In this document: one piece after another, positions 4,802 to 32,256 of the stretch
Layout of the letters: each line of letters opens with the position of its first letter
Position numbering within the stretch: position 1 is the first letter of the stretch
Assembly: GCA_044892525.1 (NCBI GenBank)
Contig: CM097885.1
Span: forward strand, 241,862,001-241,926,000
DNA: 64,000 nucleotides
Source of the DNA: Schmidtea polychroa
Lineage: Eukaryota
Reading direction: 5' to 3'
Program-made: the position numbers and the translations under genes
Notes under the pieces: generated by a model
Seen by the model: the letters and a program-made list of their open reading frames with translations, nothing else
Told to the model about the DNA's origin: nothing
Databases searched by the model: none

Positions 4802-4887
<86 letters not shown>

Positions 4888-5626
4888 GCGTGGTATGATC
4901 GCTGAGTAGAATTGTTACTCATTCAATATGTTTATTTGCAATTGTGTATCGGCATTGAAAGATACCGATCACGGTCGTGTACATATCAACTGAATGACAA
5001 ATAAGTATGCAAAATAGTAAACATTCTCATGTTTGTATTTCTGTATGTGTCTGTATGGTTCTCAATGCAAATCGAGATTCGGTCTCTCAACAAACAATTG
5101 ATTCTGATGATAATTATTTGTGAACACTGTGCTTATCATTATTCAAAGACTTGTAACTGGTTGAAAATTACGCATTTTTCTATTAATTTATATAGATTGA
5201 CATTATTTTACTGTCATATTTTCAAATTGCAATTAAGTTAAATTTTATCTACGCGTTCAGTATACATTTTTAACCTCAGAGTTTAATGCAAATCACTGAT
5301 TGGAGATATTTTTCCTTTTTTATCATTTTTAAATGTTTGACTTTATTTTAACAATTTGAGAACATTTTTTAATGAAAATTGGATCAAAAAATTATCGATC
5401 GCATTTTTGGTGATAGATTTTAACGCCTAAATTACATAATCTAACAGTTAGATTCTAACTAAACAATAAAATGAGTATTTATTTGAGGTCTGAACATATT
5501 GATTTGGATTCTTTAATACACTCTTAGTTACTAACCTACTAAAATAAATATTAATAATTATTATTAATAATGAAATTATTTATTGCATTTTTGTGTCATT
5601 TTATTTAGCCTTAAATCACAAATATA

Positions 5627-5680
<54 letters not shown>

Positions 5681-8600
5681 AATTCTTTTCCATATATATT
5701 TTATTATCGCACAAAGAATTTTAGAAGTCAATTATTCAGTGTCCATAATCATAAAATTAAAGATTTATATAATATAACCACCCAACTTACAAAGCTTTGC
5801 ATTTTTTAGTTCTAAACGAATTTATATGAATTTATCGTTAAATGGACTTTAATAATTATATTCGATGACTAAATTTCATCTTGATATAACAAAAGTACTT
5901 AAACAGGCTAGTTTTAAAGTAAATCTACTCAATTAATTAACATTACCACTTGATAATAGGCTGCACCGAGAATTTGTAGTTATCTTTGGGAATTTTATTG
6001 ATCTTTTCTTTTACTTGAGATCATAGATGAATAAGAAAATTATAATTTTTTTTTCCGTCATTTAAATTTGGCATACTTAATTATTGATAAAAGTTTCATA
6101 ATTTATCTCACTTAAATAACCGATTTAGCTGCAAATATTTGTTGATATGAGTTTTATATATTTATTTATCTAATTGTTTCTTATCAATTCTGTCATTTAT
6201 TCAACTTTAGACTAAATTTTAACGAGATCTTCGATTAAAAAAAACATGTTTTATTCAGGTCATTATCGAAGAAATTTCCGATAAAAAGAATTGCTATAAA
6301 TGTACATATATTCCACCATGTAAAGGAACCTATACAATTACCGTGCGATATGCTGAGAAAGACATTCCACGATCTCCATTTAAAGTTACCATCGATAAAA
6401 CTTCTGGAGATCCCAGCAAAGTCAAAGTATATGGTCCAGGTATAGAACAGAATGGTGTTATTGTATCAGTATCCACCCATTTCGTAATTTCCACTGAAGG
6501 TTTGCAATTCTGTTGGCAAAATATTGAAATTATTCATAATTGTTTGATTAGATGCCGGCTGTGGAGAAATTTCATGTGTCATACTCAGCCCAAATGGGGA
6601 GAAAGATAAAATACATCCGAAAATTACTCAAGAATCTCCAACTTCATACAGAGTAGAATACACAGCTCAAGAAACCGGTATTCATTCGATTAATATTTTC
6701 CTTTCAAGTGTTCAAATCAAAAATTCACCCTTTGGAGTTATGGTTCTACCAAGTACGTTTCTTTATTGTTGTATATTATTCACTGTTCAAAATTATAATA
6801 GCTGTAGTAATTAACTTTGCTTGTACTTTATGCAGGAATTTTTTTAGGAAAAATAACAAAAAAATCATAAGATACAGAAACTCTTACTAAATATCTTNNN
6901 NNNNNNNNNNNNNNNNNNNNNNNNNNNNNNNNNNNNNNNNNNNNNNNNNNNNNNNNNNNNNNNNNNNNNNNNNNNNNNNNNNNNNNNNNNNNNNNNNNNN
7001 NNNNNNNNNNNNNNNNNNNNNNNNNNNNNNNNNNNNNNNNNNNNNNNNNNNNNNNNNNNNNNNNNNNNNNNNNNNNNNNNNNNNNNNNNNNNNNNNNNNN
7101 NNNNNNNNNNNNNNNNNNNNNNNNNNNNNNNNNNNNNNNNNNNNNNNNNNNNNNNNNNNNNNNNNNNNNNNNNNNNNNNNNNNNNNNNNNNNNNNNNNNN
7201 NNNNNNNNNNNNNNNNNNNNNNNNNNNNNNNNNNNNNNNNNNNNNNNNNNNNNNNNNNNNNNNNNNNNNNNNNNNNNNNNNNNNNNNNNNNNNNNNNNNN
7301 NNNNNNNNNNNNNNNNNNNNNNNNNNNNNNNNNNNNNNNNNNNNNNNNNNNNNNNNNNNNNNNNNNNNNNNNNNNNNNNNNNNNNNNNNNNNNNNNNNNN
7401 NNNNNNNNNNNNNNNNNNNNNNNNNNNNNNNNNNNNNNNNNNNNNNNNNNNNNNNNNNNNNNNNNNNNNNNNNNNNNNNNNNNNNNNNNNNNNNNNNNNN
7501 NNNNNNNNNNNNNNNNNNNNNNNNNNNNNNNNNNNNNNNNNNNNNNNNNNNNNNNNNNNNNNNNNNNNNNNNNNNNNNNNNNNNNNNNNNNNNNNNNNNN
7601 NNNNNNTAATTGTCAATCTGCGATGACTCAAACGTGAGTCACATTGCTAACTAAAAAATATTTTATTTGCGAAAATTCTGAAGTTATATTGAAACAATGA
7701 TAATTTAAACAGTTAAATAACTAATAAATACATTAATAATAATATTAATTATAATAATAATAATAATAACAATAATAATAATAATAATATTAATAATAAT
7801 AATAATAATATTAATAATAATAATAATGACTTCAATTTTCTAATCCAACTTCTGGGCCATACCGGATACCCCAAATTATAAGAGAGTAATAAAAATTGAT
7901 CACTAATAAAGATGTAATATTAAAAATCCAGTGAACTAGTATAGTATCATTAATTCTAAGCTTATTTCAACAGTTGCCGTTGCCTTTTATCGTAGCTCTG
8001 ACGAGCGTTGAATCAACAAACTATATAATTAAGGACATTGAAACGTATGCCGAAATGTTGTGACTCACCTCGATGGTAATTATAATCATAAAAAGTTGCG
8101 ATTTTATCTATTCATGAGCAAAATCATGTCTAAATTTTCACCTTGTCATTCACGCATTAGAATGAAATTTGAGATAGAAAATATGTTTGCATTATCAGGG
8201 AAAATTCTAAGAATTCTCTATTAAGAATTCAATATCAAGTAGAAATCTTTGTGTTTTCTAGTATTATGCATTTTTAATGCCTTTCTATTGTTTTGAGTCA
8301 TTATTTTATAATAAAGCTTGGCTATAATTAAGATTAAAGAGCAAATATAATTTATGTTAGAATTTTTATCTATTAGTATAAATAACTGCTTTCAGTGAAT
8401 AAAATTTATAAAATCTGGTGAAGAACTAATTATTACAGAATCTGTTTGCCGTCAAAACGAAAGACCTTTATAGCAGCACTAATTCCTTTTTACCAACATA
8501 AATACGTTCCTAAAACCCGTTATATTATTGATACAAGTAAAAATGGTAGTGAAAATAATTTATATAATACCTTGACCTTTTCGCGACTCCTGGTACACAT

Positions 8601-9261
8601 CCATTGGGAAAGAGTTAATATGTTTATCGCGTTTCCTTTATTCTGTATAGGAAATTATATTATTGTAAAAATTCCTTTTTATTATTATATGATTATATAA
8701 TAATAATTGTTTGATGTTACTAAAGGAAGCAATGCGAAATTAGTAACGGTTTCAGGAAGAGGTATTCAAAGCAATGGAATTAGAGTTGGTGATAAAGCTG
8801 AGTTCTATATTGACACTCAAAATGCTGGAAATGGAAACCTTAACATTAAATTATTATCACCAGGTTTGTAAATTAACGAAAATTCAAAAAAACAATTTTC
8901 TTAAATTATAATCCAGAAAAATCGGAAGAATCAGTGAAAATTGCGGAAATAAATTCCAACTATTTTGAATGCTTATATATTCCCAGCAAACCGGGAATGT
9001 ATGAATTGGAAATTAATTATGATAATATCCCAGTAACAAGATCTCCATTCAAAGTAGATCTATCATAAATATTTATTAATCAAGCAAATTGTTTCCTAGA
9101 TTAATGTTTTGCCCGCCAAAACGTCTCACATTGCAGCATTCGGGCCTGGTCTGACTACTGGTGTAGTTGGGAAGGCTGCAATATTTGTTACAGATACTAA
9201 TGGGGAATTGGGAAGTTTAGGTAATTTATTATTCGTTGTAGAGATTTGGTAATTATATCTG

Positions 9262-9332
<71 letters not shown>

Positions 9333-10100
9333 TCGATTCCGCTTAATTGGGACAGTATATTTAAGATCACAGCACATATTATGTTACACATATTCTCAAG
9401 AAAAAATATTTACAAAGAATTTGATATGATGCGTTGTCTCACAGCTGATTGGCGCGGCGTCAAGCCGCGCCAATCTTATCCAGTTACTAATACACCTGCC
9501 GCGTGACAACTGTCTCATTTGTTGCTTATTTTTCAGTCACCAATACACCTAGAATTTTCAATAATAGATAACAATTTACCACAATTTAGCAAGACGAAGA
9601 TGACGATGGTGATGATGAGTTACCTGTACCTGTGACTAACCAGGAGGCAAAAAAATATATGGCCGTGTTTCAGCGTTATTTTATGCGGGAAGGAAATGAA
9701 GGAAACCCTACATCCACACTGAATATCTGTGCTGATTTCGTACAAGTGAAATATTACATAAACAAAAGACAGGCTACACTTGACTCATTTTTGCATTGAA
9801 TTAAATTGTATGTACCTACCCATTTATTATTTTAATTAGGAAATTTTTTTTTCTTAAAAGTTTATTTGTAATTTATATGATATATATGATAATTTATATT
9901 ACCTATATGTAATTTACAGTTTCCAAGAGTTTATTAAATAAAATTATTGAAAAAAATATGCATTGTTTAATTTTATGTGTGTATTACTGCTTAATGGCCT
10001 TAGTTGCCAAAATGAAATCAATGAATTGAAAAAAATGTGAAATTCGCTTAATTGGGACAAAATGTCCAAGTCCCGATGTGTCCCAATTAAGCGGAATCGA

Positions 10101-10185
<85 letters not shown>

Positions 10186-13100
10186 TCATTAGAACTGAAA
10201 TAAATTCTTTGAATTCTCTTTATATGGTTTGCTAAAATTTTCAGGATTTTCAATCGAGGGTCCAAGTGAAGCTAAAATTGAATGTTGTGACAATCAAGAT
10301 GGCAGTGCAGCGATTTGCTATTGGCCAACAGCTCCAGGAGAGTATGCAGTGCACATTCTCTGTGACGGTGAAGATATTCCCAATTCGCCATACATGGTCA
10401 ATATCCTGCCATCGAATGAAAAGACAGATGTATCGAAAGTAGGATCACTAAAAGAAGAATAACAGTTATCCATAAGTATCATTGTGTAGATTAAAGTCTA
10501 CGGTCCCGGTGTGCAGAAAGAAGGTGTTGTATTAAATACTCCCAATGAATTTACTATCGACTGTATTGAATACAAATCCGACATTAAACCGGAAGCCAGC
10601 TGTTTTATAAAAAGTGGAAAAGAAATTCCAGTTCTAATCAGTTCAGCCGGCAACAGAAAGTACCGATGTGTTTATCAGCCATTAACCGACGGTAATCACA
10701 AGGTTTTTGTTACATGTGATAATCAATCAGTTCCAAAAAGCCCTTTTAAAGTAAGAATCAAATGATTTTAATATTTACTTTTTACCAAATTATTTCCTTT
10801 TTACATTAATTAATATTATTTCATTTCTTTAATCTCCATCTTATTACGTATAAAAACGGGGAATATAATAGTAACTTTAATTTTTTTTATTATTAATTGA
10901 TTTCTTAATAAAATGCATTAAATTCAATATTGTTGGTACACAATTTGGCCATATTGTTCAGTCCATTACATAATTCGATTTGAAATTGGAGTTCTGGTAA
11001 GTCTTATTATAGGGGTGTGGAACCTGAGGCCTTTAGGCCACATGTGGCCTTCCGGAGCTTCATGTGCGGCCTCTGAAGCATTATCGAAATGAATCTTAAT
11101 TTATATAAAAAACCTTGAATTTTGAGGATTTACAAATACAAATACTTGTAACTACTGAACTGTATATATACCGTACTATACAAGCATCCCGCCAAGTACA
11201 AAGAACGAAATATGAAAGTCAATCATTCACAACCATAAATACAAAACCTATGTAGACGAATAAATAAGATTATTGAGCGCTCATCTGTGAAATGATGACT
11301 TATTTGCATCAATTTTTCGATTCAGAAATAATAAACATTTTCCAGAATATTTCGTACAGCTGCATTTTTCAAATCTGCAGACTGATTATAAACATTCTTT
11401 TAATTACTAACTGTATATAAACAAAAGATTTAAATTGAAATTAATTAATGTTAAAATACTTTTTGACTGCGGCCCCATTTGAAGGCGACAAATTTCAATG
11501 TGGCCTATGGAGATAAAAAGGTTCCCCAACCCTGTCTTATTACATCATATGGTGTAGTTTTAAATTCATATCCATTGACCATATCACTCTTATCTGGTCG
11601 TCTATGTCGATACATTTTAGGAATTGAAAATCCTATATCGATCTGTTTAATTTATCAATGCTATATCGAAAGGTTTGCGACGATTATACAATCGCAGTCC
11701 TCTGTAATCTGCATTCATTCATTGGCGTTATATCCTTGTTGTTATTAAAGTAAAAATGGTATAATGATTCTCAAAATTTCACTGTACATGCGTAACACAA
11801 TTAACATTATTCTATATTGAACGTTGGTAATCATTTTTCTCAGTAGCTATAGTTTAAGAATTTGTATTATTATTTTATATACAAAACTTTAACTAATTTT
11901 TGATAGATATCGGCGCTAACACTATTAATAAGTTTTTATTGATTTGCCATTGGGAAAAACAGTTACAGGCAACAGAAAATGAAGTTTCAAAGATAAAGTA
12001 TCTATTTGAATAAAATGAATAAAAAAGAACGTGGATATAAAAAATTAAACAAATTTATCATTAATTTATTATTAACATTTTTATTTCTTTATTCTAACCT
12101 TTATTCTGAAAGTAATTCATCAAGACTAAATGTCGTTATGACGTGCATAGCACGTCGTTTGATCTTTTCTAAGTTAAATAAGTTAAAAATAATGTCAATT
12201 CGCTGTGAATTGCTTTGAACGGGTTCGCCACACGTAGAATAGGTTAATATATTAATGGATAAATGATTAAGCCTAAACATTTACCATCTTTCCTTTCATA
12301 GTAATTCTTAAATATAACTTAAGGCAGCGTTTCCCAGCCTGTGGGTCGCGGGATCCTTCCAGGTGGTTTGCCAAATCAGAAAATTAAAAAATAAAAAAGT
12401 TGGGAAACGCTGCCCTATGGGTGTCAAAATTGTGGTTTTGAAGTTCCCAAAAAGAACTCCTTTTACACCTAAATACTCCCAAAAGCGTTAGCGGCTGAAT
12501 CTCCGCCCAGACCCTCTAATCGTCCGTGGTTCACTTCGTCCCCCTAGGTCCAAATTTTTATTGCCAATGGGTCGCCAAAGATTTTTATTTTGGCAGGTGG
12601 GTCCCTGTTAGCCAAAGGTTGGGAAACGCTGACTTAAGGTATTTAAGTGTTGAAATAGACCCTTCTGTTGTACAAATCTATAAAGGTAGAATAACAAAGA
12701 TTGTAAGGATTTTTTTATAAAAATTGAATCATCTAGTGCCAATGCATCAATGTAGTATTTCAATTTGCCAAATTTTCGGTGTTACTCAAAGTTATATTTT
12801 CACCATCAAAATATTCCCATTATTGTATGAGATATTTTTATTGTATGAAATCATATTACTTAAATACTATGTAAAATAATTTTAAATTACAAAATAAAAT
12901 GAGTAAAATATTGACTTAAGATTTAAAAAATTAGAAAATTATTTAATAAAATCCTATGTTAGTGATTATTGCACTTTCAGTGACTTTTCATAGACTTTTC
13001 ATTAACTACAAAATAATTATAAACCGAAAACCTACTGCCATTTATGAGTAGTATATAAATGAGATCATTTTCAAAAAATTATTGATTTTTTTCAATTAGA

Positions 13101-16100
13101 TTTTATTTTTTGAAATTTGTAAATATCAATTTGGTTCAATAACAATAGATCGATATAAAATCCGTTTTTTAGAAGATTATGCCATGCCATTGTGTATGTG
13201 TGTACGCGTGCAAGTGCTAGTGCATCTTGATCTGATTGGCTAATACCGTTGATACTTGCTCGAATATTCTAATCTACAATTGTAATTAAAAATTTGTTAT
13301 GAATCTTATCTTGTACTTAAACCTACTTAATTTTTAAAACAATTTCACGTATTTATGATATTTGTCTAGATGGCTATTTAGATTTTTGTTAAATATCTTT
13401 AAATTTTTAAAGTTTGTATTTTTGTAAGCAATTATTCTACTAAAAGAATTTGTAAGCACTTGTAAGATTATTTGACATTGAAATTGGAAATTCTCAGTAA
13501 CGACTTTAGGTATAGGCGACATAGACGGCTGCTTAGAGCGGCATTATTTTAAATGGCGGCAAAATTATGAAAAATTAAAATTTAAAAATATTCTTTATAT
13601 TATGAAAATTATTTGTTCTTCGTGCTACTAATATTACTTTTTATATAGCACTTTTTATGTAGCACCAAATTGTCTAATGCCGGCACTACGATTACCCCCG
13701 TGGTAACTGATTACTCGTCTAGAGCGGCATTATTTCAAAATTGTCTAAAGCTGGCACTGGAAATTCTTATATAGTACTTTATGAAATTTTAGGGATGTAA
13801 CTTTCACAAATAGATGATATGAAAATTAGCGATATGTAAATCAAATGCAATTTTCATAATGGTATATGGCTATTGTATTAATTCATTTGTGATTAAATTA
13901 TTCTTTATATGTATTTCTAATTAGGTTTTAATTTTAACATAAAATTATAAGACCTGTGAAACTCCTGTAAAATAATAAACTGGGCTAAATAGTAGCTTAA
14001 CGTTCACTCACTTTCGGTAGTAAATTTGAGACGTTATATAAGTTATACGATGATTTATAACTGTTTCCGTTAGGAAACACTGGCTACAATTGTGGTAAGG
14101 TTTTATCAATGTCAAGAATAAGACAAATCTTATTGATTTACAATATCTGCCTTTTTCTCATTTAATAAAACAACATTACGAATTTCTCAAAAATGGAACT
14201 TAAATCATGAATTTTAATATTTAATTGATTGTCATCATCACAATCTGTAAACTTGATATTCTATTAGTGGATATTTTAATTCCGGAGTACTTATTTTGTC
14301 ATTACTAGGCTCATGTGTACTTTTTATGTTTGTTATTGTACATGTTTTTTCAAGTAAAATCATATATTTTTGTCCTTCAAGGTAAAAGTAGCTCAACCAT
14401 CAAATCCAAATAATGTTAGAGTAATTGGAGAAGGTTTGCATTCTGCAACTCGATACACTCCGGCATATTTTAGCATTGATACGACAAATGCTGGTCATGG
14501 AAATCTTGTAGTAGAAATCAACGACGAAATTGGAAATATTTTACCTTTAACAATGTCTAATGACACTGATCACGATATTTTCGACGTCCATTATCAACCG
14601 AATACATCTGGACCAACATATAATTGCTCAGTTCGCTACGATGGAGTCAATATTCCTGGCAGTCCATTTAACATACAAATCAAGCCTGAAATTGATATAT
14701 CGAAAGTTTTTGTGGAAAATTTGCAAACAAGTATATCTCAAAGATAACAAATTATATAGTGAAATATTCCCCATTATAGCCATATTCCAAGAATCATTCA
14801 TCCGATTTGTTGTTAATGCTAAAACAATAGACACCAAAGGTAAAGGAACTGTGAAGGCAATATTCACAGATCCTAGCAGTTTTAAATCGGGCAGTATGGT
14901 TAAAAATAATGGTGATGGTAGCTATTCCTGTAGCTATTCTCCTTATGATGCCGGTATATACATTTACAACAGATTGGAATATATATTTCAATTCCTTTAC
15001 TAGGGACATATATCCTCGATGTTACATATGAAGATTTGCCTATCAAAAATAGTCCATTTAAAATCGAAGTCATTCCTGGCTGTGATCCTAGTAAAGTTCT
15101 CGTATTTGGGGAAGGTCTCAAAGGTGGTTTTACAAATCAACCAAATCTTTTCACGATTGATCTTGATGGAGCTGGCCAGGGAAATTTAGGTCTCGCAATT
15201 GAAGGGCCTTCTGATGCAAAAATTAATTGCACTGACAATCTGGATGGTACCTGTACTGTTGAATATTCATCAACAATTCCCGGCACCTATGATATCTATA
15301 TAAAATTCAATGATGTCGATGTTGATGGTAATTGTTATTTTTCTCATTTTTCATAATCATGTTTAATACGATTCATTAATTTGATTAAAAATGACTTTAA
15401 TTAAATTTAATTGGTCAATTTATTTATTATACTTATGATTATACTCAATAGCTAATTATGTACTTTTATTGTTTAATAATAATTTGTTACCGAAATATGA
15501 ATATTTAATTCACTAATTTTCAAGTTATTTGATGATTATTTTTTATTTTATTTATTTATGAAAATTATTTTTAAAATAATTTTAAAATATATTAAAATTT
15601 AATGTTTCAAATATATATTAAATATATTGAAAGTTTAAAAGCTTAATAAATTTCAACATTAAAATTCATAAAAATTAATTAATTAATTATTATTCTCATG
15701 AAATTATTGAAAATTATCAGGTTTTCCAATGCATGTTTTTCACCGTGAATCCACTTACGAAGAATTATTATCTTTAAATGCCCCAATGGATGATGAAAGA
15801 ACTGAAGCTGATAGTATTCTTTTGTCTTTTAACAATAGTTCTGGACATGATGAAAATGTGACATTTCCCAAAGCCCTTGATATCGACTCTTATTTTGATT
15901 TATCACCAAATATTCATTCCAAAATCGTATCATTAAATAATGATGAATTATGTGATTCTTACAAACTGACTAAAGTTTCAAATGATAACTTATCAGTGGT
16001 ATCTTCACCGTCTGACCAACATTCTTTATCCAACAATAGTAATAATTCTTTAAGCCATAATAAGACGACTAAAACGAAATTTAGTTCAAAATCACTTTTA

Positions 16101-19100
16101 CAGAATTTGATGAAAACCGTAAACAGTTGTCGAGCTTCAGGACATAAATGTTCATCATCTTCGGCCAACTTCGATCTTGGCACCATTAAAACTTCGACTA
16201 ATAAAACAAATTCAACTGAATCATTAGATAAATTTTCCAGTACACAAGAAAATATTTCCGACGAAGGAAAATTTGAAGATATTAACAACAGTTTATCCAT
16301 ACCATCAGATTTCTCTGATCTATTTCTTGATGCATCATCGGGTAGTTTATTGGGAGCTGGAGAATATTTACAGAAAAAGTATTCCATCAAATGCAGTTCA
16401 AATAGAGACAATGAAAAAAGAAAATGTGATGAAGGCATTTCTAAAAATATTAGGGATTTATTATTGACAGAAATCAACTTGGAACATAATGAGGTCAAAG
16501 GATCATCGAAAAATTTGTCGGAATCACAAGGATGTTTAAGATTACCGCCTTTATTTGAAGATAGCAGTGAAGATGGATATTCGGAAAATACTTTGGTCAA
16601 CAGCTATTTGACATCCCGAGCTACTAGTAGGTCATCATTAAGGGAAGAAATTGTAAGAATGGCAAGCGGAGATGAAGACCTAGATCAATATTTAAAAGGT
16701 TCATCAAGTTATACAGTGAGACACAGTGCTCCGAATACTCCAAACGGAGATTTTCATCTGAAGCGATTTCCTTACCGACGATCGTTTTCGTCAGAGAATT
16801 TAATTCGTAAAACAAAACTTACAGATGTTTTTACATTTTCAATTCCAATTCATCCGAAATCTGCTAATATTAGCCCAGAAAGAAAAGACACAGGCAAGCC
16901 TCCCTTGCCAAGTCCAATGCGTCATTTAATAAAATCAACTTCGGATAAGTCTAAAATTTTCAATTCCAATTTCGAAAGCGTTCTTCCGGATCCACCTTCA
17001 GAAAAATCATTGGATGTTCGTGAATTTTTAGTCGATGGTTTTATGAGCAATTTGTCGCTTGATGAATCGTTTAAATTACCAAGTTTCCCGTCAGATGAAA
17101 GTTTGAATGGAAACAATCGGAATAAATCCAACGAATCATTAGAATATAATTGGCAATTTCAAAATCAAAACATCGACTCAGATATAACGGAATGCAATAC
17201 GATTGGGTTAAATAGAACCAAAAATTCCGATTCTCTCATTCGGTTGAAATTTATCGAATCAGAAGTCTACTCTAAAATCGAAATTCCCACGCTTTCAGAT
17301 GTAGACGAAATAGATTATCATTACCTTAAACGGATTCGACCAAATAGTGCTTATATTTTTACTAAAATTCCTTCGATAAATTCTCCTCGAATTGAAATGT
17401 TAAGCAATGAAATTGTTGATTCATTAATTAATGAACATATTGAGGATCAGGAAATTCCGAAAAATTATTTGAATCAAAGTTCCCAATTGTCTTTCCAAAC
17501 AAATCTCGACGATGATTATGAGGAAGAAATTGATATCAAATCATTGAGCAATTACTCGAGTTCCATTAGCACTGGAACGAGTAGTGATATGAATTTGAGA
17601 AAATTCACAGAATTGAACTTTTCAAATATGCAGATAAATGCTAACGAAAGATTCTTCTGTAAACTCTTTCATAATTGCAACATATTGGCGACAGCTGATG
17701 TTCCGATTGTCGAAGATTCGATTCCACAAATCAACCTTTCGAACAATTTTATAGATTCACAATCGAATTTGGATAAGAATTTATTGAACTCTCCGAATTT
17801 CTTTAGAAATGAGCAACTTGAAATTTTACCAGAAATAATACATTCATATGGACAAATATCTGAACATAAAGTTCATGTTTCTGACAACAGAAATTCGGTT
17901 TTCATTCGAAAGAAGTTACCATTTTATGTGAGCTTTACACAACGTGTCAGTGATTGCAATCAAACTATTCAAACTGAAAAGTTCCAGTCGAATTTTATTG
18001 ATCAAACGAAATTCTTTGGAAAGCCATGTTTGTCGTCAAACGATTCAACTTTTCTTTTGAAAAGTCCTTTGAAATCAAATTCTTTAAGTAGATTTTCAAT
18101 GATTAATAAAGTCTTTAACAATGATAAAAAGCTTGAATTACAACATCCTGAAGATGTACATTTTTCATGGTCGAAAACTGATTCGTTGAATTATATTCAG
18201 GATATCACTGATGAATTTCCTATTCCACCACCGCCTCCTTTACCACCTCCTTTATTGGAATCTTTGAGTAGCTTAAAAGATCAGATAAAGAATTTGCAAA
18301 ACAATTCTGATAGGACTGATAGAAATCGAAGCGTTATTAGTGTTTCAAAACAATCATTAACACCAATAAATTTTCAATACAATATCAACGACAAACCCAA
18401 ACGTGTTTCACTTCAAGAATTATTGAATCAAACCTCTTTTATTGACAGACTAATGAATCGTAATTCAGAATCTTTACGACAAGAACTTGGCATGGAATCG
18501 TTTTCATCAATTAATGATAAAGATCAAAAAAATAGATTTAAAAATCCCCATCAAATTAAATCAGTAAGATCAGCTGGAAGTGATTCTCAGTTTAATGATA
18601 GAAAACCAACTAAAATTCATTCAAACAAATGTATTTCTGTGAGAGCTTCGTCGGTTTGTGAAGATACTTTAATGTCAAATGTCATTTCATTTTCATTATC
18701 TAATAATGGAAATCCAGAGGGGAAACTCAATCAACAATCAGGAGTTTCATTATTTAACAAATGCTTGAAAACATCCTCCAGCTCTTACAGCGCACTTTCG
18801 AAATTCAACGAATCAGAATCGTCATTGAAATCCGGATTAGTGTCAATTACCGATGTTACCTCATTGGCTGGTGATTGGAATTTCAATAGTGAAAAACGGT
18901 CCGAAACGATTCCAAACAAAGAGAATAGTGATAGAATCACTTGGTCGCCATCAAGTTGTAACAATGAAATTCTTTCATTTCCAAAGCGCAGTCAAGATTC
19001 TTTGTCCTTATCTTGTAGCAGGAAAGGTAATAAATTTATTTTACCATTCAACAGACATTGGAGTACAAATGATAAATTTGCTAGTAATAATATCCGGCAT

Positions 19101-22100
19101 TTTCGTGGTTATTCTGCAATGTCTAGGACTAATTGCAATTATTTGCCCAACAGTAGTAAATTATTATCATCAATTGATGCTGCGTCTAAAACCAATGCAC
19201 AATCACTATGTGATTTAAACAAATTAACAATAAATGATCTGCCAAAAAATAAAAATTACCAGAATTTATCCATCAGCCAGGAGAGCTTTGATTCTTATGA
19301 TATCCATTCAATGAAAATAAGCAGCACTTATCACAACGTTCCTTTATTTAAATATGGTATACAATATATTCTTGATTAAGATTCTAGGTTTATGTTATGT
19401 TTTGTTATGTTCATTGTTATATTATATGTTTTTAAGAGTTGCATTCATTAAATTTTGTTATAATTTTCAGGAAGTCCATTCAAATTGCCAATTCGAGATC
19501 CAATCAACACAGCCAATGTGAAATGTTTTGGTGAACCTTTAACATCTGACAGTATTAATCGAATTGATCAGCCAATTAAGTTCACAGTTGATGCGTCTAG
19601 AGCTGGAGAAGCACCTCTTAAGGTTTGAATATTCTTCATTTAATATGAGCTATTAAAATATTATAAAATATTATAAAATATTTAAAAATATAAATAATTG
19701 TATTAAGAATTCTAAATTTATAAATACTAGAACCGATTTTAAAATATAAATAATAACCAGTATATTTTGAGAAAGATTTTTAATTATATGGAAATTATAA
19801 TAATTTTAAATTTATATATATCAGTATCAAAATCAGTATCAAAAACATCGATATATTACTGATTCATAGTCTTCAAGCTTTTTAATAAATAAAATGGAAA
19901 AGAAATCAGTGGTGAAATTTGAAAAAAAAGTTCTAATGATATTTTAAATATTATTGTCAAATGATGATAAAGTAACTAATTGGTGTTTTGGGACGGTCGG
20001 AGTGATTGTATATATGAATTTCGTTTATGTATGTTTTGTGATGGGTAATGAAAACTAATTATAAATTATTATTACTTGGATAATAAACTTGTTTCATGTA
20101 ATAGGTTTATAAAGAATGTTTCCTCCTATTTTCTAGAATGCTATGCGCAAAACAATATGAAATTGAATAAAAGATTTTATTTCTATTAATTTACTTTATT
20201 ATGTTTATTTTTTAATTTTTTAATTCTTTAAATATTACTATGATAATAATTATTTATAATTGCTTAAATATACATTGCATGAAAGCTGATACCTCAAAAA
20301 ATATAGAATTTCAAGCTAAGTCATGGAAATTTATTTATTTGTTATTATTCATTTATCAAAAATCTTTTAACGCCTTGGTATTTAGGCATGTTGCAAAGAT
20401 AATCAAGGACATGAATATCCATTGGAAATAAAGTCTAGAGAAAATACAATGCCAGGAATTTATGATATAACCTTCGTTCCGACAAAATTAGGTCCCCATA
20501 CTATTGATATCAAACACGCGAACACATTAGTACCTAGTGCACCATTTTCTTTTAATATTTTGCCCAAATCTGAGCCAGAAAAAGTTAAAGTTATTGGTGA
20601 AGGTGTTGCTCCAACTGGTGGATTTTTAACACCATCTGTACCTGTTCAATTTCACATTGATGTCTCTGAAGCTGGACAAGGCGATATTCAATTATCTTTA
20701 TCAGTTAATTTTATATTATTATCGTTATCCTAATTTATATGGTACACATTATAATAGAATCCTGACGATTTATTGTTACCATTTGATATTATTGACGAAG
20801 GCAAAGGCGTATTTTGCTGTCAGTACACTCCGACTGATGCTGGAAAGCATTGTATCACTGTGGCATTTAATGATTGTCCTGTGAAAAATTGTCCATTTAT
20901 GGTTGATGTTATTCAAGTTGGAGATGCCAGTAAATGTTTCCTCGAAGGTAAAAATGAATGATTGGTATTTTTTAAATTTATATAAAAATAGTCGAAAAAG
21001 ACTCAGCAACCTAATAAAAAATTAATGAAATTCCAAGTTATTTATCAAAGTAGTTAGCGTATTTAGGGACGAAAACTTTGGTAGAATTAATATATTTTAA
21101 AATATATTCGAATTTTAAAGAGATAAAATTCAGTTTAAAATGTAATTCAATATTAAATTCGAAATTGTTCCACCAAAATGCGTTCCAAAGGTGGTAGTGA
21201 GGGTATTTTATGTGGTTGATATACCCTCCTTAAGAACAAGTCCCGATGGTGCTAATGAACGAAACGAGATGATGAACTTTAGATGGAAATTTATGTTAAC
21301 ATAACAGTTGATAAAACCGTGGAACTCCTTCAATGGTTTCACGCTAGTCAATTATAGAATGCATTTTTATACTGGCCTTACTTAATTGCACTTTCCCAAA
21401 ATTTTATGATAATGATGTGCAGCTTGTGAATGATCCTTGTCTGCCAAAGAGTCCCGAGAAACTCATATCCAAAATAATTCATAAAGGATGTTGGAGTCGG
21501 TATATATTCATCTAAGTAACTCCGTGTCGATAAGACCAATGTACGATCGAGTATAGAGTACATACCTGACTCCATTTTTATTACATTTTTTATGAAATTT
21601 TTCTACTTCTGGGCATTCTGCAAATTTTTATTTTCTCAATGATTCTGAATCTATACCATCCCTCCATAAACAAATTCAGCCTACACGTCTGATTCCACTG
21701 ATATACCATTTCTATCAATGCATTTTTTCAATTTCTTTTTTTAAATTTTTTTTTACCTGATTTATCACAATGATGAATGTCTCCATTTTTAAATTATATT
21801 TTTTTAAATTCTTTTTATTAATTGATAAAAATTTCCAAATATTTTACCACTCGCATCTTACTGAGTTCACTGATTCATTTCCAGTTGGTATTGTAAAATT
21901 GGGGCTATCAAAAGCGCAAAAATTAAGACATAATATCTCGTTAAATTACTATTTGTTTTTAATTCCATATTTCTTTCGAGCTTAATTTTTTTTCGGAAAA
22001 TTTAAATTGAAAATACAGAAAGCATATTACTGATTCATTTTGTCGGTACTAGGACAAAATATCACCGAACAAAATGTCGTGAACAAAAATATCGTGGACA

Positions 22101-25100
22101 AAATATAACATAATATTATTATTATTATTATTATATATATATATATACTCAGAGTTTATCCGACAAGATATTTTGTCCCCTTATGGGTACTGGTAACACT
22201 CAACATGTCGCAATGGTATATTATTATTCTCCACCTTGTCCTTCAATCTGCTTCGCTTCCTTCCCCTTCATAAGATATCCATAAGGTATCGCCAATACAT
22301 CCTAAGATATTCAGATAAATATGTATGAATCTATAAATAAATTTATCAGCTCATTTTATCCACATTTTATCCACCATGACATTTTGTCCTACCACCATTT
22401 TGTTTATATTATCGTCACGTATTCAAAACAAAGTTATTGAAAGTAGTAAAAACAGGACATTTGGGATCCGTTGCATAAAATTTTTAGACCTAATGCATTT
22501 CTTTAACATTGTCCTTGTCTATTTGATTTTTAATTTTAACTTATCGTTTACCTTGATTTATTTGACCTCGAATATGTTAGATGGAGTCAAAGAATATATA
22601 TTGCTCAACATTGAAACAATAATCACTATAAATACTGCTGAGGCCGGAGAAGGAAAGATTTCTTGTAGAATTGTTCCTTTAACTGAGAACGGTGAAATCA
22701 AATCTAATTTGTCCCTGCCAGTTGAAATAGAAAATAACGGCAATGGCACTCAAAGCATTTATTACACTCCAAATGAATTATCTGAATATTTAGTTGACAT
22801 TAAATTCGGTGGTGTCAGTATTCCAAATGGACAATTTAAGGAAAAAGTAATAATTTATAAATAAATAAACATGTGTTTATTTTCAACTATTTCCCATTGG
22901 TTTGTTATTATTCTGTTTTCTCTAATTTTAGACTATCGATCCCAATAACATTCCAGAAGAAGTGGTAAATTTTTTGTCGATTTCTTACAATTGTTTGTAA
23001 TATTGACTTATTAATAAGATTGAAATCGAAAAAACAAAATCCCAATTTACGTCATTCCGAAACGATACTACCGATTACACAAATGGCATGTATCCAGTAG
23101 AATTCCGATTGCCAATATCTCTTGGTGCTCAAAATATTGAAGGTAATTTTCTCAATTTTCTCACATTTATACACAATGTAACATTTATTTATGTAACATT
23201 TATTTATTACCTAATTATTCCGCATGGAAAACTAAAATATTACAATATTATGAAATTTCTATTTCATTGTTATTTGTAAATCGACTTTGTTCTATCGAAT
23301 GATTTATAATTTGTCCAAATTAATCATTGAAGTAGTAATTCTTTTAAGCTGATTTTCATTTAATATAACTGATTGATTTAAATTTTTGCCTAATAGTCGT
23401 GGTAACGATATCTAATTCCAGTGAAATCAAATGGTCTCTAGTGGGTGATGTTAAAAACCATAAATTATCATTATTANNNNNNNNNNNNNNNNNNNNNNNN
23501 NNNNNNNNNNNNNNNNNNNNNNNNNNNNNNNNNNNNNNNNNNNNNNNNNNNNNNNNNNNNNNNNNNNNNNNNNNNNNNNNNNNNNNNNNNNNNNNNNNNN
23601 NNNNNNNNNNNNNNNNNNNNNNNNNNNNNNNNNNNNNNNNNNNNNNNNNNNNNNNNNNNNNNNNAAAACGGACATTTATATTGATCATTTGATATTGGGA
23701 CAAAATCCCTTATTTGTAGTTAGATTAATAATTTAAACATTGCCATTGTCAGGTATTATTATTGAAAATATTGTTAATCGCAATAAAATTGCAGTCAATT
23801 TGTTCTTCACTCGCATTTAAATTTTAGTATTAAGACAAATTCCAAATTTCCAGGGACTTTTAATTTCAGAGCTGTGATTTAACAGGATGTAATATTTTCA
23901 CACCATTTTAAAATTAAAAATATTTAATTTTATAATTTCACAAACATCCATCGATGCATATTTCAAAAGAATGTTTGACTTTGTAACTATATGTGATAGC
24001 TCGAACAATTAGGAATGATAGAGAATACAGTGTTCCATCAATTTTCTCTGCAAGTTCGAAGATTTTTAAATGAAAAATTTTCTAACATATGGATTGGAAG
24101 AGATTGATCATTTTTCTGACATCCACGTTTACCAAATTGGGCTCCTTGGATTTATTTTTATTGGGAGATGTGCAAATCAATGTTTATTCAACTAAATCTC
24201 GATCTTTATAAGACTTATAAAATTGAATAACTAATATGATTGATGGCATTTCTGAAAATTAGGTCGAAAATATTTTCAGAGAACTACAGAATCGTACTCC
24301 CCTTTATATTACTAATGATTGTAGATATGATGAAAATTAACAATAATTAGCAGTGAATAAAAATCGCCATTCGTACATCTTTTTTACTATATATTTCGAT
24401 AGCATCACTATCATCATCAGGTTACCTACATTCACGACGGATGAATATATATATATATATATATATACTATATTGATAATATATAAACAAGTTATAAAAT
24501 ATATAAATTTTAAATTATAAATAAAAATTTTTAATAATCATTCTTTTTAAAAACAATTTTAAATAATCAATTATATTTCAACTTAAAATCATTAAAAATA
24601 TTATTTTAATTATTTTTTTTAATTATTTAACATAACTTTTATTAATATACATCAACATACAAAAACTCAATTAAAAACATTCAACACACACGTATTCACT
24701 GCATTCTGCACATTGATTTTAGGATTAAAAGTTCTTATCAATAATGCTTCACATATCACACGCTCAAAACAATTATCAAAATTTTTTGATAAGATTTTAA
24801 AATCAGACATTCCTAATTCTCTCATACAGACTTTATTGTGATCCTTAATATTGGACACTCCCTTCGGTCGACCGTGTCTTGAACTCGAGTACAGAGATGA
24901 CGGGAAGTCTCTCCAATGTATGTGGCATTACACCCATTACACGTGAATTGATAAACGAAATCCAAACACAATCCAACCGGCGTTTGAGATTTACTAACAA
25001 ACATACTACGTACTTTGAACGATTTTGAAACAATTCTATAATTCAATGTACCCAACTGTTTACCAATCTTTCTTTTGAAATCTTTATATCCTTCAGAATA

Positions 25101-28100
25101 CGGCAATACCATCGTATATTTTGGCTCATCTTGTTTGTTAATATCAATATTCATATTCACTACATCATTCGACATATCAGTCAATTTACATTCATTCATA
25201 CTACGATCCTAAGCATTATTCATACATTTATCAACAGTGAATGAATAAAAACACAGTGTTTAGTATAAATCCTTTATCGAATCATTTTCATATTTATGAA
25301 CACCTTGTATAATTGAATATTCGATCATTCTATTGGTTTCTTATCTGTTTAGCCATTGTTTCAACTCCAAGTGGAATAAAGGAGTCAGCATTGGTTCATG
25401 ATAACAATAACGGCAGTGTTACCATTCGTTATGAACCCCGTGAGCGTGGTATGCATGAAATGAATGTCACTTGCGATGGAATACAAATACAAGGCAGTCC
25501 ATACAAATTCTTTGCTGAAAATGCCGGACTAGGAAAAGTAGCTGCTTACGGTCCGGGACTGAGTCACGGTAAAACCGGCTTGCCAGCTGAATTTACAATT
25601 GTCACAAAAGATGCCGGAGCAGGTATTGAAGATTCCATTTGCGGGATTTTAATTCGATATTTTTCTCTCGTCCTTTTCAGGAGGTCTTTCTTTAGCAATA
25701 GAAGGACCATCGAAAGCGGAAATCGTTTGCAAAGATAATGAAAATGGTAGCTGTGATGTCACCTATTACCCATTGATCCCCGGAGATTATAGTATCATCA
25801 TTAAATTTGCTGATCACAACATTCCCGGATCACCATTCATCGCAAATATAATTGGTTAGTTTATTGATTCGATTATAATTTGATTAGATTTCGCAATAAA
25901 ATTTATCCAATCGCGTTCCTTTGAAATTATATTGAAATAAGAGTTAAATTTGACCTTTATTACACCTTTACTACAACAATAAAAATATTTTATATGTATT
26001 TTTGATTCATGAGTTCAAGGTTTATGATTAAATAATTGATTTTATATTCTATCAGTATAAATTTGTATACACATATATCAATATTGTAATTTGTTATCAA
26101 ATCATTTATAATTATTGAGTTTATATTTATTATCGCATCAAATCATTTGGAATTTAATGAGTCCGAAAAATAACAGAAAAATGCGTAAGTTTTATCTTTA
26201 ATAATTCAACAAAAATTTTATATAGTTATTGTTTTTTAATAAATGGTTAAAATAAAAAAATCAATTTCTCAACTTTTTTTAGAGTGAAATATTCGTTTAT
26301 TATTAGTTTCATTATTTTTTCCTTCCATTGAAAATGATTCAAGAAATTATTATTCTATAAAAATTGTTTGCAAATTTGATGAAAATCATTTAAAAAATGA
26401 TTTTTGGTTTATTTTAATTTTTGTTTTAAATTTAAATATTATTTTTATATTATTTAATTTTTCTTGCTTTTTGACGTAATGAATAATAAAATTATGTGCA
26501 GATTTTTATATTTTATTTTCATATCTTTAACTTCCTAACCGACGGTAGTAGATATATAACGGTATTTTTTTCATTGGTAGTTTCAGTTGATTTTTCGTGC
26601 TTCTAGTCGGTTTCAAAAGATAAACTTTCACTTTTAAACACACGATTTTTGTATTATCGGAAGCCAAGAATAATCATTCCAATTATTTAATTAATAAATG
26701 TATACTGATCAATTACCGGCGTATGATCCCATTTGGGCATGTTTATTATATTATTACACGTCTCGCTTATAATGTTAAATTTATAGATTCAGTTACAATT
26801 CTTCAGACTATCTTTGATCTAAGTACATTCTTTATGAATAAAATTAGAATGTTAAACTTATTCTCCATTGTCAGATATTATCGCATTTTTCGCAAACTTT
26901 CATAATAAAAGTCTAATTTAATTTATTCATATTTAAAATCTTTTTTAATTAGTTTTTTTCAAACAAATGTGATTCTGAAACTAAAGTATTGTCCAAATTC
27001 ATAAAAACGTTTAGTTTTGACCAAAATACTACGGAAAACATCGTAATTTTATAGATATTCTTTATGTGATATTTTGAATTAATTATAAAATTATTGAATT
27101 TTTAGTTTAAATTTTAAAATAAGAAGATAAAGATGTTCAATAATCCTGTCCATTACACCAGGTTTCGAAAAAATTAATTAGGACTTCAAAAAGTAAATAA
27201 TTATATTAGCCCTTTAGTGCAGAACTGTACTTAAAAGTCTTGCCGTTATTTTCTTCCATAATTTAGTCATTTGATCGTAATTCGACCGCTACTGTCTGTC
27301 GGCATTTGCTAAGAACACATATCGTTTGGATTAGCGCGCAGTGGTTAACTGTTATACACATCTGTCGTGACTATTAGTTCGGCAATTGTAGTGTGTTCGT
27401 GATTAAAATTTAATTCTTTTAGTTAATCCTTAAACCACTGAAATAGAATTACGAGGAACCGAAGTTCTCAACGAAACTGACCGTTGCAAGCAAACTATGT
27501 GTTTGATCGTGTTGAAAACTACAAGTTATGGTCGGGAGTTTTACAGACAAAAAACGGTCTTACTGGTTGGAACGCGAAAATATTTTGATTTGAATCAAAT
27601 GGGGTTTTTATGATGACCGTCTGTAGACGGTTTTAGTGGTTAAAGGTTTAAATACAGATTTGGGCACTAAAGGGTTAAATGTGATTATCACAAACTTTCA
27701 AATGAATATTGTGCTAAATGTGCTTAGAATTGATTCTTAAATAATTGAAAATTTTATAATGGTTTTCGTAGGAATACTTTAAAAATCACGAACTATTGGG
27801 TTCACCAATAAAAGTACATAAAATTGTGAAAAATTAATGGTTTATTTATTATTTTCCTTTTTTATTATCTTCCGTTGTGCAAATTCAATACCTACATTAT
27901 AATTCTAAATATCTCTTTTTCAAAGCTTTAAAATTTAATGGTCCTTGCTAATTTAGCAGAAATTCCGGATTTCGAAAAGAAGGGGCCCAAAGGTTGTAGG
28001 AATGACATTGGTAATTATTTTATCAGTAAGCGCATATTGGTATAAAGTTGCCTGTGAGAACTTATAAGTTAATTAATAAATTATGTTATTAATAAAGATA

Positions 28101-31100
28101 ATTCGACAAGTTATCTGTGTAAGATTTTTCAAAAAGATATTATTTATTTAGATAAATACGATGATAAACTTAAAACGTGTTAGTTCAATGTAAAATTTCT
28201 TTGAATGTTTTGTTTAAGTTTTATTCTCTAATTCTCACATATTTTGATATAGTAATTTTAAATAAATATATCGCTTCAGGCGAACCACAAAGACGATCTC
28301 AAATTTGTATTGGAAGCACAAGTGATGTGCCTCTGAAAATAAATAACCTTGATATCAGCACGTTGACTGCCAGTGTTCGTGCTCCGTCTGGTAAAGAGGA
28401 ATCGTGTATTTTGAAAAAAATGCCTAATGATAATCTTGGTAAGTGATTTTTATTTTCCCTCGAGAGATTTTGTCTTTTTAATGAAATAATTGATAAAATT
28501 GACCACTTGCCACAGTTGTAGTATTGAAGAGTTTTGGATATATCGTTACAATTGCAAATTTCATTCAGGTATATCTTTCACTCCTAGAGAAGTTGGAAAT
28601 CATTTCATCAATGTCTACCAATCTGGAGCTCATATTATTGGAAGTCCATTCAAAATCGTTGTCGGCCAGAATGAGATTGGTGATGCATCGAAAGTTCGAG
28701 TCTATGGCGACGGTTTGAAGTGTGGAATTTCCAACGAAATGAATTCTTTCACAGTCGACACTCGAGAAGCTGGTATGTTTTACTGTTTTAATTGAATGGG
28801 AAATATCTATATGTGGTTTCCATTTGAAAAGGTTATGGCGGCCTTAGTCTATCAATCGAAGGTCCAAGTAAGGCTGAAATTGAATGTAGAGACAACTACG
28901 ATGGCACTTGTCAAGTGTCCTATACACCGAGTGAACCGGGAACATATATGATTAATATCAAATACGCAAATGAGCATGTTTTGGGTAGCCCGTTCGCTGT
29001 GAAAATTACCGGAGAACCATCGGCTAAACTGATGGAGAAAATTATTTGTAGACAGGAAGCCGCCGACATTACTCAAGTCGGCTCACAGTGTGAATTGACA
29101 TTGAAAGTTCCTGGTAATATTGTAAAATATTGAGTGAAGATCGTATTTATCGAATGTTGTCAGGTACGCACCATTCGGATATGAGAGCAACCGTTACTAA
29201 CCTTTATGGGGCAACGGAAGTCTGTGAAATTATCGATCTCGATGATGGGCATTATAGCATTAAATTTATCCCCAAAGAAATGGGTCTACACACGGTTGTT
29301 GTCCAACATAGAAATATGCACATTCCTGGTAATGGAATTCTTTGTTTATAATTCCTAACCAATGAAATGGTGATTGTAGGTAGTCCGTTCCAATTCACTG
29401 TGGGGCCGATTGTTGACGGTGGGGCCCATAAAGTAGTTGCCAGTGGAAATGGATTGAAACTAGGACACACGAGTGGTCCTAATGAATTTAGCATTTATAC
29501 TAGAGAAGCCGGAGCAGGGGGGTTATCTATAGCCATTGAAGGTCCCAGTAAAGCAGAAATCGATTTTGAAGTGCGTATTTGGAAAAAGACGTTTATATCC
29601 TTATTAATTAAATGGAACAGGATCGAAAAGATGGCTCGTGCGGTGTGAAATATTTCGTCACCGAACCAGGAGAATACATTTGCTCAATCAAATTCAACGA
29701 TGACCATATTATCAATTCCCCATTCAAAATCATGATCAATGAAAAACAAACGGATTTTATTTCTGTAGCATCTGTTGGTAACAACGCCTTGGCTAAGGAA
29801 TGGATGGTAAGTTTTTAAATATTTATAACGGGCATATTTAATCTCTACTCTTGGGATTTCCGGGTTTCCATGATCTCAATGCATTAAAAATGAGCTGAAT
29901 TTTAAATGATAGAACTTATTAAAACAAAGAATATTAATTAGTACTTTCATCATTGTCATCATTACTTTTTATCAGAACTGAGCCGTAAAAAATTGACCGA
30001 CTCCTATTCCTTGTCATATTTTCTTTGATGAATAACATTACGGTATGTGTCAATGAATGTATTAGATTCAGAATTTTGGCAATACATTATGTGGAACAGT
30101 TTTTGCTGAAAATCTTATCCGACAACGATAGCAGCAGAAATAAGAAGGCTAATAGCCGTCAATTGCCTTTAACTAATTATCTCGCAAGTAATGAAGTTAC
30201 TGTTGCTATGACCACTTAATAATGGAAATGGGAAATGGCCAATAAAGTTGGACTATAATTGGAGCATTGTATTAGGAATCTATTACTGAAAAATGCTAAC
30301 AAAAATGTACTCAAGAATTTCTAAACCGTAAAATTCATGTTTTTCAAGATAGTCACATCACTGAGTAAATTACTTGGTGATAAACATTCATTTCAAATAT
30401 TGAAAAATACCTTGACAAACAAGGGAAAATAAAACGACTCTAGCTTCATTGGAGGGTTTATTTTCCACGCAGGTCGACGTTGATAATTATAAAATTAAAA
30501 AAATTCTGTAGATTTTGAAACGACTCAACAGCCATGATTTTTCATTTATATCACATTAGGAATCACATTATTAATTTAATATAAATTTATATTCGAATTT
30601 ATTCAATTACAATATTATTTTATCAAAAAGTGACAACTTGCTTATTAATTTCCAAATAAAAGTAAAAATTGATGACATTTTTGTTAACTTTTTTTCTTTA
30701 TATTAAATTTAGCGATCATACTATTACTTGTTATTTTATCCGCCCCTTTAAAATTGTTTCCAATTTCGCTTAAAATTCATATTGATGATTATCAATAATA
30801 AAACCATTTCGTTATATTTCGTCAACCTTTTTACTTGGTATGTTTAATGTCTATCGTATTTTTTTTCTTATTTTACATCATTTCCTAATTTTCCTTTAAT
30901 CCCTTCCAAAGGCAACTTACTATTTATTAGACCGAAATTCATTATTGTCTATTGCTATTCAGTGAAAGTTTATAAAGATACCATTTCCAAAATAATTTTT
31001 ACGATGGAAATTATCTTTACGGAATTGTAAAATTTTATACGGAACCGTTGATTGTAAATGTTTTATCAATAAAAAGCAAATCAAATAAATAAATATTTCA

Positions 31101-32166: not shown

Positions 32167-32256
<90 letters not shown>

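Follow-up and report, generated by a model that had tools for sequence, protein, structure and literature searches.

A 3.6-kb open frame in the filamin gene of Schmidtea polychroa is probably a giant alternative coding exon

Introduction

The locus described here raises the question of what an open frame of more than 1200 codons is doing inside an intron of a filamin gene. It lies in a 64,000-nt stretch of the Schmidtea polychroa genome (NCBI GenBank assembly GCA_044892525.1, contig CM097885.1, positions 241,862,001 to 241,926,000 of the forward strand), which is referred to as the window and is numbered from its first letter. The frame might belong to an independent gene nested in the intron, or it might be a coding exon of the filamin itself, as a preliminary description made from the letters alone had proposed. 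The analysis reported here indicates that the filamin gene probably uses positions 15721–19356 as a giant alternative (cassette) coding exon.

Results

Open Frame and Splice Junctions

The open frame runs from 15711, directly after a TGA at 15708–15710, to a TAA at 19377–19379, and mechanical calling of open reading frames (ORFs) reports 15729..19379 on the plus strand, encoding 1216 aa. Taken as an exon, the frame is bounded by ttatcag (last base 15720) and gtatac (first base 19357) and measures 3636 nt, or 1212 codons with the split glycine codon included. The filamin exon upstream ends with ..GAT GTT GAT G/gtaatt at 15327 in phase 1 (slashes mark splice sites), and the filamin exon downstream begins with ttttcag/GA AGT CCA at 19471, again in phase 1. 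All four exon ends are in phase 1, and both inclusion and skipping keep the frame and rebuild the glycine codon, with inclusion giving the protein sequence ..DVDVD-G-FPMHVF.. at the 5′ junction. The length, the phases and the fit with 15327 and 19471 had already been given in the preliminary description, and they were found to be right when the coordinates were re-read.

Chance was rejected as the origin of the open frame: the base composition of the giant exon itself predicts 0.075 stops per codon, corresponding to log10 P = −41, and none of 500 shuffles of the exon stayed open for more than 135 codons. The other two frames of the exon contain 67 and 157 stops. The earlier argument that such a frame in AT-rich DNA speaks for selection is borne out by this probability and by the conservation in orthologues described below. 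The encoded insert has serine as its most frequent residue (S 16.7, N 10.2, L 9.5, K 7.2 and D 6.7%). An antisense open frame of 213 aa with a TTG start (15959–16600, minus strand) also lies within the giant exon, and is probably a by-product of the codon bias of the sense frame.

Host Filamin Gene and Insertion Site

The Trichobilharzia filamin P0004 (2263 aa) is collinear with positions 2487–38472 from residue 4 to residue 2263 in tblastn, which places the entire filamin gene within the window; the filamins of Trichobilharzia were the closest full-length ones retrieved, with 27–80% identity per aligned segment. The N-terminal tandem calponin-homology actin-binding domain (ABD) is present, with P0004 residues 4–281 (PF00307) matching 2487–3746 at 58–80% identity, and is followed by the series of filamin immunoglobulin (Ig) repeats detected as PF00630 matches, the last P0004 residue, 2263, falling in 38284–38472.

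The insertion site corresponds to P0004 residue 1066, after the eighth ‘SPF’ signature, where P0004 runs from ..FNDVNIPG directly into SPFQVPIRD.. with no insert. The insertion falls in the F–G turn of approximately the eighth Ig repeat of rod 1, so that the repeat is split between two exons. The exon piece 15036–15326 matches solved repeats of FLNA, FLNB and FLNC, with E values down to 4e-32, and the split repeat is about equally similar to FLNA Ig19, Ig21, Ig17 and Ig4 and to FLNB Ig9 and Ig12. Judged from its sequence, it is a repeat of the class-A, ligand-binding type. The preliminary description had equated it with FLNA repeat 12; this assignment was not confirmed, several human repeats being about equally close.

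Refinement junction by junction revealed that the exons of the filamin gene are mostly of phase 1-1, and that its introns (2820–38254) are sharply bimodal, about a dozen measuring 46–59 nt and the others 0.13–3.6 kb. The donors of the gene include GTAAT, GTATG and GTAAG, with GTATAT at the exons ending at 14730 and 14953; as GTATA-type donors occur at these constitutive exons, the GTATAC of the giant exon is ordinary here.

Orthologues and Coding Constraint

Two orthologues of the insert were obtained. P0001 (UniParc UPI0006107BC1) is a deposited model of 1568 aa from a sister species, with 89% identity and zero indels, while P0002, with 44% identity, was called on a Logan contig of 4494 nt (L001, run SRR33002330) in which introns are present and which is therefore genomic or at least unspliced. 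When the insert was searched against 1.84 billion representative proteins, P0002 was the sole match, and the searches of Pfam, of PDB profiles and of a protein atlas returned nothing credible. Thrombin_light (E 0.17) and DUF7452 (E 0.065) in Pfam were below the credible threshold, and they were rejected as low-complexity noise, as were APAF-1 among the PDB profiles (E 0.096) and the atlas look-alikes with scores ≤0.84 (exophilin-5, APC and others). The earlier view that the insert contains no recognisable domain stands, with no credible Pfam or PDB family. Exact look-ups of the window ORF, of P0004 and of a further trematode filamin, P0005, yielded no record.

A transposon or retroelement ORF, homology to which had been set beforehand against the exon reading, was likewise rejected: no mobile-element homology was found in Pfam or among the 1.84 billion proteins, and no extra copies turned up in a limited look. 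Since only orthologues were matched in the protein searches, the giant exon appears to be lineage-restricted, and it does not look like the ORF of a mobile element.

The orthologues further show that the giant exon is real coding sequence. Over the whole exon, the comparison of the window with L001 gave a proportion of nonsynonymous differences (pN) of 0.36 and of synonymous differences (pS) of 0.81, the synonymous sites being saturated, and 11 islands are almost invariant in all three orthologous sequences. All three exons have a length of exactly 1212 codons (15721–19356 in the window, 441–4076 in L001 and residues 118–1329 in P0001). In the alignment of the window with L001 there are 13 gap runs per side, amounting to 38 codons each way and cancelling, for which the chance of a net zero is roughly 0.02. 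The equal length may reflect a constraint on the length of a tether formed by the insert, or may be a coincidence.

Evidence for Splicing into the Filamin

The exon boundaries were compared between the orthologues. The exon of L001 begins at ttatcag/GC TTC CCA and ends at AAA ATT G/gtaact, and 127 nt further on the next filamin exon opens with ttcacag/AC AGT CCA, while the orthologous upstream exon in L002 ends with ..GTT AAA G/gtatgt in phase 1. The acceptor AG, the donor GT and the phases are kept in this distant orthologue at 44% protein identity, and the P0001 gene model joins the exon to the filamin exons at the same sites (..DVDVNG-FPKHVF..).

The 5′ end of the exon is under coding constraint from its first codons. 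The ATG at 15729 corresponds to lysine in P0001 and to arginine in L001, that is, the exon has no conserved start codon of its own at this place. From the AG to the methionine shared by the orthologues, the 22–23 codons have a pN of 0.12 and a pS of 0.79 between the window and L001, with 3, 3 and 12 differences at codon positions 1, 2 and 3 (binomial P = 0.004). The nucleotide identity of this stretch is 74% without any indel, as against 41% (ungapped) in the preceding 68 nt of intron. Constraint that extends from the AG to the shared methionine, together with an ATG that is not conserved, argues that translation enters from an upstream exon. BLASTN of the upstream intron against L001 detected no similarity upstream of 15706, i.e., beyond 15 nt before the AG, and no conserved block fit for an alternative first exon was found in that intron. 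A search with P0001:60-360 for RNA-derived protein fragments across the 5′ junction returned only P0003, which derives from a genomic contig reading into the intron.

At the 3′ end, the in-frame stop that the window holds within the host intron (19377–19379) is absent in L001, where the frame without splicing crosses the 127-nt intron, reads on into the following filamin exon in a frame other than that of the filamin and ends at 4249. The donor must therefore be used in L001, and an unspliced 3′ end is implausible. Taken together, these comparisons speak for an exon spliced into the filamin and against a nested gene.

Predicted Structure of the Split Repeat and the Insert

The split repeat was modelled with AlphaFold2 from P0001:26-175, which comprises its strands A–F and the first 57 residues of the insert; the alignment also contained 16 further filamin repeats, all of them truncated ahead of strand G, and hence carried no strand-G information. 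The predicted local distance difference test (pLDDT) exceeded 90 through residue ~100, with a value of 93 for the block of residues 91–100, and residues 96–101 (KHVFHR), which belong to the insert, form a strand. Model residues 9–103 superposed on FLNA Ig21 over 95 of 96 residues (root-mean-square deviation (rmsd) 1.5, Z 16.9) and on FLNA Ig17 over all 90 residues (rmsd 1.0). The motif FPxHV.H is invariant in three species, and FPMHVFHRE of the insert and SPFKLPIRD of the downstream exon have a P and an R in common, similar hydrophobic positions and an acidic residue at the end. The first residues of the insert are predicted to stand in for strand G in the split Ig repeat. Such a conserved strand-G mimic would make sense only with the exon attached to the upstream repeat, and the model argues that the insert departs from the domain as a linear tether and not as a closed loop.

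The two stretches that resemble each other in this way, at 15723–15749 in the insert and at 19473–19499 in the downstream exon, are too short for a significance test. The 5′ end of the giant exon may descend from a duplicated end of the exon coding for strand G.

For residues 1–1200 of the insert, AlphaFold2 with a three-sequence alignment gave a pLDDT below 50 at every position (mean 27) and only short helices, at 555–568, 819–831 and 897–921. The order-promoting residues W, C, F, I, Y, V and L make up 28% of the insert and the disorder-promoting ones (including D and N) 63%. The insert is predicted to be a disordered, domain-free chain, and the check by AlphaFold that had been called for earlier came out on the side of disorder.

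The conserved motifs in this chain include a serine-rich acidic island, KLPFYV, an acidic FPxPP motif, a helical KR.SLQELL.QTSF and a motif of 12 letters. FPxφP is the established consensus for ligands of the Ena/VASP EVH1 domain. The FPxPP motif of the insert is a candidate docking site for EVH1 (Ena/VASP), and its proline run is a candidate ligand of profilin or SH3 domains.

RNA Evidence

The RNA evidence consists of shares of sampled sequence words found in public runs. Of the 459 words sampled from positions 15200–19700, a share of 0.04 (~18 words) occurs in four RNA assemblies of the window's species, which is close to the yield of the 280 nt of flanking exon; of the 369 words sampled from the giant exon alone, the same four assemblies contain 0.00. 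We read this as a sign that the transcripts sampled from the window's species mostly skip the exon. A second organism is represented by at least 14 probable RNA runs from eight studies, which hold a uniform 0.06–0.08 of the exon words whatever the size of the run. This share fits a full-length orthologue that is ~8% diverged (0.92^31 ~0.08), and in our reading the orthologous exon is transcribed in a sister species.

Features of the Locus and Its Surroundings

The positions of the features discussed are collected in Table 1. The GC content of the DNA is 28.6%. Tandem repeats were observed within and beyond the filamin gene. A 252-nt unit occurs 4.6 times with 98% identity in a filamin intron (33367–34512) and has the appearance of a recent tandem duplication or of a satellite, while the last long filamin intron carries a 21-nt minisatellite (ACATTCAGATATTGAATACAC) of 37 copies with 80% identity (37091–37868). 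Downstream of the gene, a strand-asymmetric satellite extends over 50815–52239, its nested periods measuring 53, 96 and 149 nt; it is nearly free of G on the plus strand, with a GC skew of −0.94 in 51001–52000. The window also contains six runs of N (6898–7606, 23477–23664, 31832–31969, 35172–35446, 57529–57734 and 58105–58362), and the mechanical ORFs 6828–7631, 31521–32033 and 34988–35464 are inflated by such runs.

Table 1. Location of the filamin gene, the giant exon and their parts in the window.
Feature	Position	Strand	Evidence or remark
Host filamin gene: CH-CH actin-binding domain, ~20 Ig-type repeats, C-terminal repeat	2487..38472	+	Collinear tblastn, PF00630 matches, splice map
Upstream filamin exon, strands A–F of the split Ig repeat	15004..15327	+	Ends in phase 1
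Upstream intron, 393 nt, very AT-rich	15328..15720	+	Last 12–15 nt gaaaattatcag conserved = acceptor region
Giant exon (probable), 3636 nt	15721..19356	+	Phase 1 at both ends; orthologues P0001, L001
FPMHVFHR codons, predicted substitute of strand G	15723..15746	+	AlphaFold2 model, superposition, conservation
ATG opening the mechanical ORF, unconserved	15729..15731	+	Lys in P0001, Arg in L001
First Met common to the three orthologues (MDDER..)	15786..15788	+	Codons upstream under coding constraint
Invariant 11-residue motif with FPxPP, acidic residues before it	18216..18248	+	Conserved-island and motif scan
Longest C-terminal conserved island, contains the FPxPP motif	18123-18248	+	Island scan
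Conserved island with the longest predicted insert helix (low confidence)	18387..18500	+	Island scan, AlphaFold2
Downstream intron, 114 nt, donor G/gtatac	19357..19470	+	In-frame stop 19377-19379 if donor unused
Downstream filamin exon: true strand G (SPFKLPIRD), then next repeat	19471..19622	+	Splice map, tblastn

Discussion

The most economical reading of these observations is a filamin that, when the giant exon is included, would become a longer and softer cross-linker that also recruits actin regulators. Skipping would remove an intron of 4143 nt and give a canonical filamin of ~2260 aa, while inclusion would add 1212 codons in frame and give a filamin of ~3470 aa. The first ~8 inserted residues (FPMHVFHR) would take the place of strand G, and the split Ig repeat would still fold. 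The remaining ~1200 residues would form a disordered chain rich in serine and asparagine with 11 short conserved islands, which would lead back to the true strand G and then to the rest of the rod. A flexible tether would in this way join the ABD and ~8 repeats to ~12 repeats and the dimerisation repeat, and might double as a docking platform. We infer the alternative use of the exon, as well as the functions as tether and as scaffold. The claim of the preliminary description that the ORF is an in-frame filamin exon and no orphan nested gene is backed by the comparative and structural evidence, and its view of the skipped form as a canonical filamin fits the insert-free trematode filamin and the RNA assemblies that hold the flanks only. 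Its warning that gene finders could miscall the exon as a nested gene is partly met by P0001: the sister-species model splices the exon at the exact sites, so that the exon is not always miscalled.

Several points weigh against this reading of the locus. P0001 is an automatic, truncated model and counts only as an independent prediction. The last 25 codons of the exon are weakly conserved, with 46% nucleotide identity over the last 68 nt, so that the conservation of the donor rests on the end-to-end alignment. The window has an ATG three codons past the AG and a stop seven codons past the GT, as a nested gene would. The kinds of the RNA runs are marked as guessed, the second organism is presumably, rather than demonstrably, a diverged sister species, and the RNA support consists of word shares and not of the exon–exon joints 15327–15721 or 19356–19471. 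The protein collections searched contained no RNA-derived protein with the exon, although their length limits would miss a product of 3470 aa, and the prediction of disorder comes from a shallow alignment of only three sequences.

An independent gene nested in the filamin intron, with its own promoter or trans-spliced at 15720, would start at the ATG at 15729 or at the shared methionine at 15786, would stop at 19377–19379, and would owe its splice-like ends to coincidence. We consider this highly improbable, though the start and stop of the window lie just where it would have them, and the match in phase is not very improbable in a gene whose exons are mostly of phase 1-1. The window-species RNA assemblies, moreover, hold the filamin flanks without the ORF, as if expression of the two were uncoupled. 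Against a nested gene stand the ATG at 15729, which is not conserved, the stretch before the shared methionine, which evolves as coding sequence, and the similarity of the intron to L001, which begins 15 nt before the AG and occurs nowhere else in the intron; in L001, an out-of-frame ATG comes first and the first stop is reached only within the next filamin exon. A further argument against a nested gene is the predicted strand-G mimic. At the other extreme, the filamin of this lineage might always carry the insert, as the intact splice sites in three species and the inclusion of the exon in the sole deposited sister-species model would allow. A constitutive exon is the least probable of the explanations considered, as the four window-species RNA assemblies hold about the full number of flanking words but none of the exon words, and the filamins of related trematodes are annotated without an insert at the site.

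An isoform that uses only one of the two filamin junctions is unlikely, although somewhat less so than a nested gene, and it could take two forms. In one, the acceptor at 15720 would be fed either by a spliced leader or by a promoter in the intron whose first exon is tiny and not conserved, and the product would be a filamin without the ABD, in which a disordered N-terminus of 1200 residues precedes repeats 9–20. A short ABD-less filamin of this kind, FLN90 of Drosophila cheerio, arises from an internal promoter, as described in a preprint (bioRxiv 10.1101/2020.10.13.337626), and a very short first exon would evade the similarity search of the upstream intron. However, coding constraint starts exactly at the AG, and the strand-G look-alike that AlphaFold2 docks on the upstream repeat would be pointless in a protein devoid of that repeat. 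In the other form, the giant exon would be an alternative last exon, giving the ABD and 8 repeats followed by a disordered tail, which agrees with the stop of the window seven codons past the donor. Here, the conserved donor GT and phase are at odds with the proposal, and in L001 the donor is not followed by a stop, and the downstream intron of 127 nt contains neither AATAAA nor ATTAAA.

A variant of the cassette exon that we regard as possible, but improbable, gives the strand mimic a mechanical role. The exon would bring a surrogate strand G, the genuine SPFKLPIRD would be left spare ~1200 residues downstream, and the two states, looped and extended, would constitute a switch sensitive to force or phosphorylation. 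The surrogate and the genuine strand G could compete for one slot; alternatively, the spare strand could sit in the ligand groove of a class-A repeat. In human FLNA, strand A of Ig20 occupies the ligand groove of Ig21. Under this variant, a constraint on the length of the tether would explain why the three species have kept exactly 1212 codons in the face of 26 indel runs.

No published description of a giant filamin exon was found in a literature search, and the cassette exon is best compared with other scaffold proteins. In ANK3, a single exon of 7.8 kb gives rise to the ‘giant’ ankyrin-G (PMC12798937). Like the giant exons of ankyrin-G and ankyrin-B, the filamin exon is a single multi-kb exon in the gene of a cytoskeletal scaffold, lies between folded domains, is restricted to a lineage and encodes a long serine-rich stretch without domains, which in the ankyrins adds reach and binding sites. 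Unlike them, its host is a filamin, it has no sequence homology to them, and its alternative inclusion is something that we infer; it also splits an Ig domain inside a β-hairpin and appears to bring a replacement strand. Within the family, the Ig rod of FLN-2 of Caenorhabditis elegans is interrupted by large nematode-specific regions (PMC3143143). The filamin rod is in both cases interrupted by long, lineage-specific non-Ig sequence, but the regions of FLN-2 are described as lying between repeats, whereas the present insert would be one cassette exon within a repeat of an otherwise canonical 20-repeat filamin. No nematode or other non-orthologous protein was matched by the insert, and the likeness to FLN-2 is one of architecture only. 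The ankyrin giant exons are the closest system in mechanism, and FLN-2 is the closest in family.

Vertebrate filamins vary by smaller elements, namely the hinge-1 exon, the var-1 deletion between repeats 19 and 20 and the 82-residue insertion in FLNC Ig20. These too are non-Ig sequences that are alternative or specific to a paralogue, and they modulate the flexibility of the rod and the binding of partners, but they measure tens of residues, while the giant exon has 1212, about half as many as the remainder of the protein contains. A long disordered region added by splicing in a tissue-regulated manner is known from Drosophila Zasp52, an actin-associated scaffold (PMC13521563), which is a different protein of different architecture and offers a functional analogy only.

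The locus holds two lessons for annotation: before an orphan ORF in an intron is called a nested gene, its splice phase should be checked for conservation and the stretch ahead of its first methionine for coding constraint, and a stop a few codons past a GT does not prove the end of a gene. The conserved islands, such as the acidic FPxPP motif, offer hypotheses on binding partners, among them Ena/VASP, profilin and SH3 proteins. If the cassette exon is true, it would be a natural example of a folded domain that tolerates a very large insertion, and the giant-exon strategy of the ankyrins would have arisen in filamins as well. Filamins are usually seen as rods of Ig repeats with splice variants of tens of residues, and a conserved optional exon of 1212 disordered residues in rod 1, above all one that brings its replacement strand and lets the interrupted domain fold, would change that view.

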